Positions 35,985 to 40,687 of a stretch of 64,000 nucleotides of DNA are shown here, in pieces (the stretch's first letter is position 1; every line of letters starts with the position of its first letter). Source of the DNA: Obrimoposthia wandeli (Eukaryota). The stretch lies in assembly GCA_977020255.1 (NCBI GenBank), contig CDROCS010002027.1, positions 62,001-126,000 of the forward strand, in the 5' to 3' direction. The notes below the pieces were generated by a model, which saw nothing but the letters and a program-made list of their open reading frames with translations, had not been told where the DNA came from and made no database searches. The position numbers and the translations under genes are program-made.

Positions 35985-36686
35985 CTAGCGTAGTCCCTTG
36001 TGACGCGCTGCTTCCATCACTACATCCAAGACTTGATCTATCGTTAACTGCGTAGAATCTAGTATTAATGCATCTTCAGCGGGTTTTAAAGGCGCTATTG
36101 CACGCTGCGTATCTCGTTCGTCTCGTTTTTTTAGTTCAGCTAATATCATTTCAAGGCTAGCATCCAGCCCCTTATTTATCAACTGCTTATATCTACGACT
36201 TGCGCGCTCTTCGACACTTGCATCTAAATACACCTTTAATTGTGCCTGTGGAAACACCACAGTCCCCATATCACGACCATCAGCAATAAGCCCTGGCACA
36301 TGTGAAAACTCGCGTTGCCTATCTAGTAATGCACTGCGTACTCCAGGAATTGCCGCTATAACTGAAGCCATATTCCCTGTTTCTTCTAGACGTAATTCTT
36401 GAGTAACAGATTCCCCTTCCAGAATAACTTGCAGATCATCTTCTCCTTCTTGTACAACAAACTGCACATCTAAATGTGCCGCTAGTATTTGCAACGCATC
36501 TTCGTCTTCAACTGAAACACCATGGTGTTTAGCGGCTAGAGCAGTGAGACGATATAAAGCACCACTATCGAGTAAATTCCAGTTAAACCTTCCTGCTAAA
36601 AGCTTGCATATTGTCCCCTTACCAGAACCACTAGGACCATCAACCGTAATCACTGGACTGATTGATTCGCTTTTATTTTGAGACAT
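35985..36686 (-). CDS. cmk: Cytidylate kinase
   Basis: [30 protein letters not shown] and RDERD. Confidence 0.97.
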
Positions 36687-37346
36687 TAGTCTCCTCCTTT
36701 CTTATTATAATTCCAGCTCGTACTGAAATGTCTACAAATTCTGGAAATGATGTCGCCACTTGTGAGCAATTAAGCACCTTGACATCGACACTTGATCTTA
36801 AACCTGCCATCGCAAATGCCATTGCATTACGATGATCTCCTGCACTATCAACTGTCCTAGCTTTCAGTTGACCACCTTCAATAATCACGCTTTGTGCTTT
36901 TTCCTCTACTGATATACCTAATATGCGTAACCCTGTAACCCTGCAACCAAGACTGCAATTGGAGCGCTCTCTTTATGTCTGAATTCAGCTAATCCACTAA
37001 TTTCAGTAACACCTTTAGCGCAGCTTGCTGCTATAAAAATAATTGGAAACTCATCTATTGCAGCACAGACAAACTCCTGTGGGATTATAGCGCCCGTTAA
37101 TTCGCTATATTGTACTTTAATATCAGCAATAGGCTCATCATTAACCTCTCGATGATTGATTAATTCGATGTTTGCACCCATTAAATCTAAGATTTTTAAC
37201 AAACCTAAACGCTTAGGGTTAACGACAATTGCTTTTAATAAAACGTTTGCACTAGGACAAATAAGTGCTGCTACTATAAAAAATGCTGCGGATGAAAAAT
37301 CACCCGGCACAATTATCTCGCCCTTAAGCCTTGATCCAGGCTTAAT
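36673..37346 (-). pseudogene. aroA: aroA (EPSP synthase) remnant, formerly fused to TyrA
   Basis: In frame with tyrA across a TGA at 37347-37349. An internal deletion joins the N-terminal VPGD to the mid-protein (F)SSAAFF. An 8-bp duplication TAACCCTG x2 (36928-36943) shifts the frame. DEFP, KES and DHR..M motifs are still recognisable. Confidence 0.93.
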
Positions 37347-38318
37347 TCAAAAAATGGTATCTATTGTTTCTGAATCTGCGATAGATGCAGTGCCGGTGAG
37401 CATTGTCCCAAAGTGTTCACGAGCATTACGCGCCCTAATAAAAACGCCTTTTATCTGTTGCTCATTTTCAGTAGCTATCGCTTGTCGCAAGTACTCTAGA
37501 CCGGTGCTAAAAGTATCTATTTGTTGCAAAATAGCATCTTTATTGGCATAGCATACATCACTCCACATCGTAGGATCTGCTGCAGCGATTCGCGTAAAAT
37601 CACGAAAACCTCCCGCTGCGTATCGAAATATATCTAAACTCGCCGATTCTTTAGCGAGCGTATCCACCAGAGAAAATGCTAACAGATGCGGTAAATGGCT
37701 AGTAGCGGCTAACACTTCATCGTGCTTTTTCGCTTCCATTTGCAATACTTGTGCACCTGTACTTTGCCACATACGCGCGACAACCAAGATCGCTGATTCA
37801 TTCGCATTTGTATGCGGTGTTAAGATCACTTTATGTTTTACAAATAATTGGCTATTTGCAGCTTCAACACCACTTAATTCGGAACCTGCGATAGGATGAG
37901 CCGGTATAAAATTTGCGGGAACAATACCGAAAACATCAATAGCAGCCTTAATCACGCTTCCTTTAGTACTGCCTACATCACTGATGATCGTATCAGCTTG
38001 TATGTCGTCTTTAATAAGCTCTAAAACAGCGGCTGTCGCTTTTACAGGGACCGCTAAAATAATTACATCCGCCTCTCGCACTGCACTTTCAAGGCAGTTA
38101 CTACCTTGATCGATAATACCGAGCTTAACACCTAACTCAAGTACTGGTTGGCTGTTATCATAGCCAACAATTTTTCTTGAAAAGCCATTTTCTTTTATCG
38201 CTTTAGCCAACGATCCACCAATCATGCCCAAGCCAATTATTAAGGTACTTTGCACTTTGTAGAATTCTTCTTGGTCACTGTTTTTAGCAATGCTTTGGCT
38301 AATTCCTATATTCGACAT
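37347..38318 (-). CDS. tyrA: Prephenate/cyclohexadienyl dehydrogenase
   Basis: GLGMIGGS, DVGSTK, HPIAGSE, SHLPH and GGFRDFTRIA are intact. Confidence 0.93.
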   Translation of the reverse strand: MSNIGISQSIAKNSDQEEFYKVQSTLIIGLGMIGGSLAKAIKENGFSRKIVGYDNSQPVLELGVKLGIIDQGSNCLESAVREADVIILAVPVKATAAVLELIKDDIQADTIISDVGSTKGSVIKAAIDVFGIVPANFIPAHPIAGSELSGVEAANSQLFVKHKVILTPHTNANESAILVVARMWQSTGAQVLQMEAKKHDEVLAATSHLPHLLAFSLVDTLAKESASLDIFRYAAGGFRDFTRIAAADPTMWSDVCYANKDAILQQIDTFSTGLEYLRQAIATENEQQIKGVFIRARNAREHFGTMLTGTASIADSETIDTIF

Positions 38319-38353: not shown

Positions 38354-39490
38354 TTAAAGAACTGCTCGCGGGTAGGATCCCAGTATTTTAATTTCGCCGC
38401 AATTGGCGGCTAATTGCTGCAAAATGCGTTGAATGGTTGGTTCGCTTTGATGTCCTTCAAAATCAATATAAAAAACGGAACAGTCAGCGCCTAACACACT
38501 TTCTCCAGTGTAAGTATCGATACGAGTCAAACTGACTTCGTTTTCCCTAAAGGGAGCTAATAGAGAATACAAGGCGCCAGGTTGGTCTTTCGTTGCAATA
38601 AGAATTGAAGTTTTATCCACCCCAGAAGGGGTAATATGCTGGCGACCCACGATCAAAAATCGTGCCTTATGCTCATTACTACTACTAATGTTTTGCGCTA
38701 ATATTCGTAACTTCAAAGAAACTGCGCCATCTGAGGCAATAACAGCACTACTTTCTTCTGAAACAGCCATCTGCTGAGCCTGCTCTAAAGAAGATAGAGC
38801 GATGCGTGTTGCACCAGGGCAATGTTTATCTAACCACTTGCTGCATTGATTTAAAGTCTCACTCAGCGCATAAACTTTTTTTACGTCAGGTAATGCTAAA
38901 TTATGTTGCTGATCATTAGCGCTAGCATACAAATGTAACTGAACATCTAGGTCAACTTCACCACAGATATTTAAAGAGTAGCGTTTAAATAGGTCTAAGG
39001 TTTGATTTGCCACCCCTTGAGTACTGTTATCTATAGGCACTACTCCGTAATTCACATCACCACTTTCAACTTCTTTAAATACCTGGTCTAAAGAGTTAAC
39101 CGCTATCGTCATTGCACTATTGCCAAAATGCTTGTGTGAAGCAAGTTGAGCAAAGGCACCAGCTGGGCCCAAATAAGCAATTTGTAAAGGTTTTTCATGC
39201 GCTAGGCATACTGACATCACTTCGCGAAAAAGCCTTGCAACCGCTTTATCTTCAAGTGGGCCTTCGTTACGCTCCATTACTTTGCGCAGTACTTGAGCTT
39301 CACGTTCCGGACGGTAAAAGACAGCATCATCAGTGCCTTGGAATTTTTCTTTTACCACTGCAACTTGCTGAGCACAGCTCGCTCTTTGATTAATCAGCTG
39401 ATGTATTTGTTGATCAATAGCATCAATTTGAATGCGTAATTTCAGTAACTCTTGTTCTTGTTGTTCTTGTTGTTTTGGCTGAGCAGTCAT
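38354..39490 (-). CDS. pheA: P-protein: chorismate mutase + degenerate prephenate dehydratase + ACT
   Basis: The CM domain is intact (LR..ID..D...R...K..YRPERE). PDT/ACT architecture is present, but its catalytic motifs are substituted. Confidence 0.9.
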   Translation of the reverse strand: MTAQPKQQEQQEQELLKLRIQIDAIDQQIHQLINQRASCAQQVAVVKEKFQGTDDAVFYRPEREAQVLRKVMERNEGPLEDKAVARLFREVMSVCLAHEKPLQIAYLGPAGAFAQLASHKHFGNSAMTIAVNSLDQVFKEVESGDVNYGVVPIDNSTQGVANQTLDLFKRYSLNICGEVDLDVQLHLYASANDQQHNLALPDVKKVYALSETLNQCSKWLDKHCPGATRIALSSLEQAQQMAVSEESSAVIASDGAVSLKLRILAQNISSSNEHKARFLIVGRQHITPSGVDKTSILIATKDQPGALYSLLAPFRENEVSLTRIDTYTGESVLGADCSVFYIDFEGHQSEPTIQRILQQLAANCGEIKILGSYPRAVL

Positions 39491-39604: not shown

Positions 39605-40687
39605 TTAACCGTAACTTTTTTCAAAATCTTGCATAAATTCAACTAGAGCATCTACTGATTCTTCTGATACCGCATTGTAGATACTCGCTCGCATTCCACC
39701 TGCCGCTTTGTGCCCTTTTAAGTTCAATAAATCAGCTTGTGTCGATAGCTCTAAAAATTTATCATCTAAGCCAGGAACAGCAATATTAAAAGGCACATTC
39801 ATTAACGAGCGATTAGCATGCTTAATAGCATTAGTATAAAAATCACTATTATCAATAGCAGCATATAACTTAGCTGCTTTGCGACGATTTACTTGTTCAA
39901 TTGCCGCCACGCCACCACGAGATAATAACCATTCAAATACTAAACCAGATAAATACCAAGCAAAGGTAGGAGGCGTGTTAGACATTGACTCTGCTTGTGA
40001 ATGCACTTGATAGTTGTACATTTTTGGAATGTTTGTTTGCGCTTTTCCCAACAGATCATCGCGAATGATAACCACTGTTAATCCAGCTGGGCCAATATTT
40101 TTCTGTGCGCCGGCATAAATCATTCCGAAGTTTGAAACATCAATTTCTTTAGATAATATATCTGATGACATATCGGCAACTAAAGGAACATCACCCGTTT
40201 GCGGAACATAGTCAAAACTCAAACCACCGACTGTTTCATTACTAGCATAATGAAGGTAAGCCACATCTGAATTTAAAGTTAGCTCAGATTGCTCTGGCAC
40301 AGATAGGTAATTACGCTCAGCGGCTGTTGCTATAACTTGTACATTAGAAAAACGCTGTGCTTCTACAATAGATTTACTAGACCACATGCCTGTTTCAATA
40401 TAAGCAGTGTTTTGATCAGCTCTGGCTAAGTTGAGCGGTATCATGGCAAACTGACTGGTCGCTCCGCCTTGTAGAAACAACACTTTGTAATTATTAGGTA
40501 TTTTTAGCAAATCTCTAAAATCTGCTTCTGCCTTTTGCGCCACTGCAACAAACTCTTTGCTGCGATGACTCATTTCCATGATAGAGAGGCCTTTTTGGTT
40601 CCAATCTAACAATTCACTTTGCGCACGCTCAAGCACTTCGCTTGGTATTGCAGCAGGCCCAGCACTAAAATTATGCTTACGAAACAT
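39605..40687 (-). CDS. serC: Phosphoserine aminotransferase
   Basis: NFSAGPA, FLQGGA, SNETVGG, GAQKNIGPAG, NTPPTF and GGMRASIYNA. Confidence 0.97.
   Translation of the reverse strand: MFRKHNFSAGPAAIPSEVLERAQSELLDWNQKGLSIMEMSHRSKEFVAVAQKAEADFRDLLKIPNNYKVLFLQGGATSQFAMIPLNLARADQNTAYIETGMWSSKSIVEAQRFSNVQVIATAAERNYLSVPEQSELTLNSDVAYLHYASNETVGGLSFDYVPQTGDVPLVADMSSDILSKEIDVSNFGMIYAGAQKNIGPAGLTVVIIRDDLLGKAQTNIPKMYNYQVHSQAESMSNTPPTFAWYLSGLVFEWLLSRGGVAAIEQVNRRKAAKLYAAIDNSDFYTNAIKHANRSLMNVPFNIAVPGLDDKFLELSTQADLLNLKGHKAAGGMRASIYNAVSEESVDALVEFMQDFEKSYG

Follow-up and report, generated by a model that had tools for sequence, protein, structure and literature searches.

A P-protein with a canonical chorismate mutase and a remodelled, non-canonical prephenate dehydratase domain in a clade of marine gammaproteobacteria

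The window analysed here, a 64,000-nucleotide stretch of DNA (NCBI GenBank assembly GCA_977020255.1, filed under Obrimoposthia wandeli; contig CDROCS010002027.1, positions 62,001 to 126,000), carries a variant pheA gene (38354..39490, − strand) in which a chorismate mutase (CM) domain is fused to a remodelled prephenate dehydratase (PDT) domain and an altered ACT domain, the architecture of the bifunctional P-protein. The open reading frame (ORF) is intact, begins with ATG and encodes 378 residues, comprising a canonical AroQ/CM_2 chorismate mutase (residues 18–100; 39191..39439, −; Pfam, 78.9 bits); a PDT-like domain (residues 104–284; 38639..39181, −) predicted to keep its fold, in which the canonical catalytic motifs are replaced (Pfam accession: PF00800, 150.5 bits, cut-off 25.2); and an ACT domain (residues 295–361; 38408..38608, −) with its GAL motif kept and its ESRP-type motif replaced, which Pfam recognises only weakly (18.6 bits, under the 27-bit cut-off). 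Upstream lies serC (39605..40687, −; identified by ORF, Pfam and synteny), and downstream lies tyrA (37347..38318, −; Pfam and NCBIfam), a prephenate/cyclohexadienyl dehydrogenase gene encoding 323 residues and severed from its former aroA fusion partner, of which a frameshifted remnant is found at about 36673..37310 (−; model positions ∼531–733 only, Pfam and NCBIfam). The gene order gyrA-serC-pheA-tyrA(-aroA)-cmk-rpsA is conserved between the window and its relatives, and the position within the serC-pheA-tyrA operon, together with the three-domain architecture, identifies the gene as the pheA orthologue.

Motifs were compared by pairwise alignment to the solved PDT structures 3mwb, 4lub, 2qmw and 2qmx and in a 30-sequence alignment, and the window's motifs align with the G(T/S/A)(F/Y)(T/S), ENS.EG, pre-Q loop, TRF and ESRP elements of the solved proteins. 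Five replacements that a sequence-only reading of the window had reported were all present where claimed once their coordinates were rechecked: GPAGAFA for GPEGTFT (residues 108–114; 39149..39169, −); DNSTQG for ENS.EG (residues 154–159; 39014..39031, −), with E158Q fixed in the clade described below; ALSE for (A/S)HQQ (residues 208–211; 38858..38869, −), with Q215-C216 kept downstream; EHKARF for DN(T/S)TRF (residues 273–278; 38657..38674, −), the catalytic Thr becoming Ala276; and DTYT for ETRP/ESRP, the phenylalanine-site motif of the ACT domain (residues 325–328; 38507..38518, −). The nearest canonical relatives (Amphritea, Neptunomonas, Neptuniibacter and others; 50–58% identity) read GPEGTFTQQA, NS.EG, DN(T/S)TRF and ETR(P/S) at these places. 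The heaviest changes are T276A in TRF, a motif reported as critical for PDT catalysis (PMC13217925), T112A in GTF, E158Q, the replacement of DN by EH, and those at R327 and P328 of ETRP. Two of the reported replacements are real and count for less as evidence: the first two positions of the SHxQ element vary in canonical relatives (A/S/L, then H/P/T), the loop before the conserved Q reading SHPQ in 4lub and 2qmx, STHG in 3mwb and SIAP in 2qmw; and the initial E-to-D change in DNSTQG is conservative, with E kept in most clade members, so it carries little weight. In the ACT domain GAL is retained (PGALYSLL), a 2-residue insertion occupies the loop after the lost ESRP-type motif, and the Arg position is F, H or Y across the variant clade. 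The changes are not an assembly error, since the same motifs occur in independent assemblies from other samples (P0001, P0002; 93–94% identity).

Profile scores divide the protein along the same line. The CM part exceeds the cut-off of the NCBIfam equivalog-domain model TIGR01807 (103.2 against 69.55 bits) and keeps 47 of 49 canon-invariant CM sites, in agreement with the sequence-only reading, which had described an intact frame and retained mutase residues. The PDT part falls under the NCBIfam equivalog cut-off of NF008865 (188 against 219 bits), which the canonical relative Amphritea balenae P0029 passes at 267 bits, and the protein scores 140.7 bits on NF007910 against a cut-off of 577. 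The window's PheA therefore has the equivalog-level AroQ domain, the PDT domain and predicted fold, and the operon position of a P-protein, and lacks the equivalog PDT score, the TRF and the ESRP. The core of the sequence-only reading thus stands: the protein has given up the canonical catalytic Thr and the Phe-site motif and retains its frame, predicted fold and mutase domain.

Whereas that reading took the gene for an isolated case, its state proves to be old, stable and common to a whole clade. A protein search with the window's PheA returned 22 proteins at 63–94% identity, followed by canonical Amphritea and Neptunomonas proteins at ≤57%. The substitutions are common to 22 of 22 close relatives in the 30-sequence alignment, and EHKARF is invariant in all clade sequences aligned (22 proteins; 10 of the DNA-backed alignment), so that site-wise conservation among relatives, a check put forward with the sequence-only reading, finds the replaced residues themselves fixed. 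The NCBI-named proteins among the 22 are mostly labelled only 'chorismate mutase', a name attributable to the non-canonical dehydratase domain of the clade proteins. Across 190 species genomes of the family containing Osedax symbiont Rs2, the variant is found in 12 (66–93% identity, the remainder at ≤58%), among them Rs2 itself, two 'DT-Nitrincolaceae' metagenome-assembled genomes, isolate AS21 and two complete chromosomes of 4.8–5.1 Mb. In a quick maximum-likelihood search the variant is monophyletic (Shimodaira–Hasegawa-like approximate likelihood ratio test, SH-aLRT, 100) and sits on the longest internal branch of the PheA tree, at 0.62 changes per site. Its sister (SH-aLRT 99) is P0023, from a 1954-bp contig, with an intermediate state in which GPVGAFT and EHRARF occur and ES.SEG and ETRA are still there, which suggests that the two Thr-to-Ala changes and the DN-to-EH change came before the E-to-Q and ETRP changes. 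A horizontal origin of the odd PDT domain was considered and ruled out by the conserved synteny and by a CM domain nearer to the family (75%) than to distant Pseudomonadales (66%).

The domains have not evolved alike. Identity between the clade and its near canonical relatives is 75% in CM, compared with 67% between those relatives and distant Pseudomonadales; the corresponding values in PDT are 45% and 61%. A drop in PDT identity with CM unaffected points to a burst of change specific to the dehydratase domain, placed by the sequence comparison on the clade's stem branch, with the mutase part canonical throughout. Site-wise counts follow the same division: among the 49 canon-invariant CM sites, 47 are kept, 1 is replaced and fixed and 1 is now variable; among 32 in ACT, 28 are kept, none is replaced and fixed and 4 are now variable; and among 60 in PDT, only 35 are kept, with 7 replaced and fixed and 18 now variable. 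These 18 newly variable PDT sites are mostly polar (R139, E228, N235, R240, D221, Q271 and others). Other positions have become newly invariant in the clade, namely K275, C224, G255 and T212 and, within an ACT loop of the form GES.LG..CSVFY, G334, S338 and V339.

After the burst, the PDT and ACT domains were frozen again under purifying selection. Within-clade PDT identity equals that among canonical relatives (68% in both) at similar CM divergence (85% and 83%). Ratios of nonsynonymous to synonymous substitution rates (dN/dS), computed by the simple pairwise Nei-Gojobori method, with deeper pairs saturated, are 0.033 for CM, 0.046 for PDT and 0.050 for ACT between the window and L123, and 0.030, 0.087 and 0.105, respectively, between L013 and L019; unsaturated clade pairs as a whole span 0.046–0.087 in PDT, 0.037–0.105 in ACT and about 0.01–0.03 in CM, with 0.015–0.052 for PDT in canonical pairs. 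The fold also appears to be retained. An AlphaFold2 model of the window's PheA has a mean predicted local distance difference test (pLDDT) score of 76 overall, and in its PDT and ACT parts all ten-residue blocks but one, that of the DNSTQG loop, reach pLDDT ≥70, mostly 80–94; the top Foldseek matches of this model are the PDT structures 3mwb, 6vh5, 2qmx and 2qmw together with GqqA, with template-modelling scores of 0.70–0.78 by target. The PDT-like domain thus has the features of a pseudoenzyme: a predicted fold that is kept, a key catalytic residue that is lost, and purifying selection across 12 species. Because constraint on PDT and ACT equals that in canonical enzymes and new residues have been fixed, the module is under selection for some role, be it in structural coupling, with an altered effector or in an altered reaction.

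A search for separate dehydratases, suggested with the sequence-only reading, found canonical PDTs in all 12 clade genomes. A stand-alone PDT is encoded in 185 of the 190 family genomes, including 12 of 12 with the variant, and the 3 family genomes that lack it and have a PheA match all carry a canonical full-length PheA. Three PDT-domain genes occur in every one of 10 clade genomes sampled. The variant PheA scores 136–148 bits on the PDT domain in these genomes and the ∼283-residue stand-alone PDT 185–192 bits, the latter with canonical motifs throughout (IAYQGYAGAYS, IENSTAG, SHPQALAQC, GNTTRF). The third gene encodes a PDT–ACT protein of about 275–290 residues whose motifs include NNQTRF and, in the ACT part, SRP; it is present in all 10 clade genomes sampled and in none of 10 other family genomes sampled (loci G002 L100:1489-2316 and G001 L125:8866-9693, and in the window's assembly C2814:1495-2325, L119 numbering); sampled canonical relatives accordingly have the stand-alone PDT and lack the third. 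A stand-alone CM_2 protein of 97 residues shows a similar distribution, occurring in 4 of 5 clade genomes (e.g. G001 L126:8175-8447) and 0 of 5 canonical ones. The stand-alone PDT, the 97-residue mutase and the third PDT were also viewed in context in one complete clade genome, where the genes around them (MCP, globin, DUF924, GntR, a Cys/Met PLP enzyme, GST and HDOD) offered no functional or pathway hint. The motifs and scores make the stand-alone PDT the likely working dehydratase of these bacteria.

The window comes from a mixed assembly of 1.35 Gb (G000) that contains at least 25 PDT loci. On contig C2866 this assembly includes a stand-alone PDT that shares 83% identity with its Rs2 counterpart and 96% with the one in G188, the closest relative, whose PheA is 93% identical to the window's; this PDT passes the equivalog model NF008866 (393 against 359 bits), and the contig resembles the window in composition (G+C 0.37, tetranucleotide correlation 0.97). 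Among the other PDT-like matches in the mixture, C1539:158434-159240 and C425:252260-253066 contain 10–14 in-frame TGA codons, which suggests organisms that read TGA as sense, or pseudogenes.

Elsewhere in the family, a second lineage has altered PheA by a different route. Besides the variant clade, 41 family genomes gave no PheA match that was both full-length and high-scoring (best E values 1e-24 to 1e-65), and all 41 retain the stand-alone PDT; the deletion-type PheA was inspected in 7 of these 41 candidates, 2 of them read directly. In those two, the gene between serC and hisC (G048 L128:2805-3695, −; G140 L129:2493-3386, +) encodes a ∼296-residue protein of CM, half a PDT and ACT, in which the first PDT subdomain (Pfam PDT positions 1–78 only) is joined directly to the TRF-bearing strand, followed by ACT, the second subdomain of ∼85 residues having been deleted with the SHxQ region included; the TRF position reads PRY in G048 and TRY in G140. 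Five more genomes (G053, G074, G079, G137 and G181) have a truncated PheA-type PDT match, split over two frames in G053, and each has an intact stand-alone PDT. These proteins resemble the variant in their locus, in keeping mutase and ACT, in the co-resident stand-alone PDT and in a dehydratase part that is non-canonical; they differ in that loss came by deletion and not by substitution, and in that their ACT domain keeps E(T/S)R. Deletion of half of the domain in an independent lineage shows that the PDT domain of PheA is dispensable in the family of Rs2, and the P-protein dehydratase appears to have been given up at least twice within it, with mutase and ACT kept.

The explanation favoured here, with moderate confidence and on the strength of sequence comparison, is that the variant PheA remains active as a chorismate mutase, while its PDT domain has ceased to dehydrate prephenate and has been kept as a structural or regulatory/allosteric module. 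Within a single clade of Nitrincolaceae/Oceanospirillaceae-like marine gammaproteobacteria the P-protein diverged in place: the stem-branch burst took out the Thr residues of both TRF and GTF, the DN preceding TRF and the Glu of NS.EG, and the ACT domain lost the Arg-Pro of its ESRP-type motif. Redundancy provided by the family-wide stand-alone PDT would have permitted the loss. The protein would now act as a chorismate mutase whose product goes to TyrA, encoded by the adjacent gene, and to the stand-alone dehydratases. The PDT domain, having ceased to carry out prephenate decarboxylation/dehydration, would serve as a folded spacer and oligomerisation module linking ACT to the mutase, with an effector that has possibly changed or been lost.

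Several points weigh against this explanation. The sequence-only reading had gone as far as a feedback-free, monofunctional mutase carrying a dead PDT domain, a proposal favoured by the motif loss, the separate PDTs and the half-PDT deletion elsewhere in the family, and opposed by continued selection on the module. A 'dead' domain, argued from motif loss, is unproven, and freedom from feedback is not established, the ACT domain being conserved with an aromatic residue (F/H/Y) at the Arg position across the clade. The segment E-H-K-A-R-F is invariant, with Arg277 and Phe278 kept, and new constrained sites have arisen at K275, C224, G255 and T212. Relative to CM, the PDT domain is about as constrained as in canonical enzymes, whereas more drift might be anticipated in a domain that acted only as a spacer. 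The extra 97-residue CM_2 means that the variant's mutase is not obviously indispensable, yet this is the most conserved part of the protein. Finally, contigs of the mixed assembly, that of the stand-alone PDT included, are tied to the window's organism by composition and identity only.

Some of the same evidence would suit a domain that is still a prephenate (or arogenate) dehydratase, with His274/Lys275 standing in for the lost Thr, a reading regarded here as distinctly unlikely. Its attraction lies in the invariance of EHKARF and the new constraint on K275, in the retention for the most part of Arg277, Phe278, Asn155/Ser156 and Gln215, in PDT dN/dS values down to 0.046, and in some tolerance of the motif, Ser taking the place of the TRF Thr in canonical-looking Marinobacterium proteins; a change of Thr to Ala, however, eliminates the hydroxyl entirely from a motif reported as critical for catalysis (PMC13217925). 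The 18 once-invariant, mostly polar PDT sites that now vary in the clade point to a lost older constraint, the PDT part scores under an equivalog cut-off that the canonical relative exceeds (188 and 267 bits; cut-off 219), two other canonical PDTs reside in the same genomes, and a sister lineage in the family deleted half of the domain. It is unlikely, though less so, that the PDT–ACT module as a whole has been repurposed, such that the invariant EHKARF cleft and the new ACT loop GES.LG..CSVFY recognise another ligand or carry out another reaction on a prephenate-like compound. Such a shift would have been enabled when the clade gained its third PDT and additional stand-alone mutase, and it would make the P-protein either a new bifunctional enzyme or a mutase equipped with a novel allosteric sensor. 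An outright new function of the PDT-like domain, whether another reaction on a prephenate-like substrate or a ligand sensor with a new effector that controls the mutase, is more doubtful still. The replaced residues of the cleft motifs and ACT loop are fixed and conserved, BacA (PMC2797259) and GqqA (PMC4879726) provide precedents, and the GqqA structure is among the top fold matches; NCBIfam matches are nevertheless limited to PDT, CM and, for the ACT part, phenylalanine hydroxylase, the gene remains part of the core serC-pheA-tyrA operon rather than of a secondary-metabolite cluster, the locus has no co-occurring partner genes, and there is no positive pointer to a particular substrate or ligand.

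That the gene is simply decaying, with the shikimate pathway lost and the substitutions representing neutral wear, is practically excluded, although the tyrA-aroA fusion directly downstream has indeed been reduced to a remnant in its aroA half: in the window tyrA ends at a stop, and all that is left of the once-fused aroA is a frameshifted stretch covering its last ∼200 residues. The substitutions are shared with relatives that have the same pheA motifs and an intact tyrA-aroA fusion of 757–763 residues, one of them 94% identical; dN/dS between the window and the 94%-identical relative is 0.03–0.05 in all three domains; and clade genomes encode a second, stand-alone AroA of 426 residues that scores 464–476 bits on TIGR01356, above the fused copy. 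The window's assembly likewise holds three intact stand-alone aroA orthologues at 85–87% identity, one of which (C2469:96237-97511) has the window's composition. Pathway decay was accordingly rejected as the cause. With stand-alone aroA present in the clade genomes and in the window's assembly, the shikimate pathway is probably intact, the fused aroA having been a redundant copy that is now lost.

The favoured explanation, an active mutase with a retained, non-dehydrating PDT module, places the variant beside several known systems. It shares with the bifunctional PheA of E. coli and Pseudomonas its architecture, the operon gyrA-serC-pheA-tyrA-aroA-cmk-rpsA, a canonical AroQ and the PDT and ACT folds, the latter as modelled, and departs from it in the replacement of the TRF Thr by Ala, DN by EH, (S/T) by K, the GTF Thr by Ala and the NS.EG Glu by Gln, in the replaced ESRP/ETRP with the 2-residue insertion after it, and in a score under the PDT equivalog cut-off. 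The stand-alone PDT of PRK11899/NF008866 type (alphaproteobacterial-like, solved as 6vh5) found in the same genomes has homologous PDT and ACT domains and, unlike the window's gene, keeps all catalytic motifs and passes its equivalog cut-off. The closest described phenomenon found is in Nostoc/Anabaena, where a degraded, catalytically inactive AroQ domain is fused to TyrA (PMC1173090), again an aromatic-pathway fusion that retains one catalytic domain after loss of its function; there the dead part is a mutase on a dehydrogenase, whereas in the window the mutase is intact and the dehydratase altered, and the altered domain, unlike that of Nostoc/Anabaena, is clearly under strong purifying selection. 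Proteins of PDT fold in which canonical dehydratase function is absent or changed are also represented by BacA, which resembles PDT and is a non-aromatising prephenate decarboxylase (PMC2797259), and by GqqA, which resembles PDT and did not complement pheA (PMC4879726; PDB 7alz/7am0), both of them stand-alone proteins from other contexts. No specific affinity of the variant to either was found, no such family being among the NCBIfam matches, with the BacA sequence itself not compared directly. A literature search of limited coverage found no described P-protein with a non-canonical (pseudo-)dehydratase domain.

Annotation and pathway tools read any CM-PDT-ACT gene as a phenylalanine-branch enzyme, which is probably wrong in ∼53 of the 190 species of this family, bone-worm symbionts included: a canonical dehydratase domain has been lost from the P-protein, through substitution in 12 species and, it seems, through internal deletion in ∼41, with the stand-alone PDT probably taking over. 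The family thereby offers a natural example of one half of a fusion enzyme degenerating after redundancy, apparently reached twice and by different routes, one of which left a full-length domain under strong selection. It would be a good system for the study of non-catalytic roles of the PDT/ACT module in a chorismate mutase, such as allosteric coupling, oligomerisation or the binding of a new ligand.

Further PheA-type genes are present in the window's mixed assembly. A second Oceanospirillales-like organism (C5674:13921-21212) has a canonical PheA with DNTTRF and IETRP (219 bits on Pfam PDT), which adjoins an intact 763-residue tyrA-aroA fusion. An ORF of ∼383 residues with a low-scoring PDT domain (122 bits; C5543:21845-22648) may represent a further diverged PheA.

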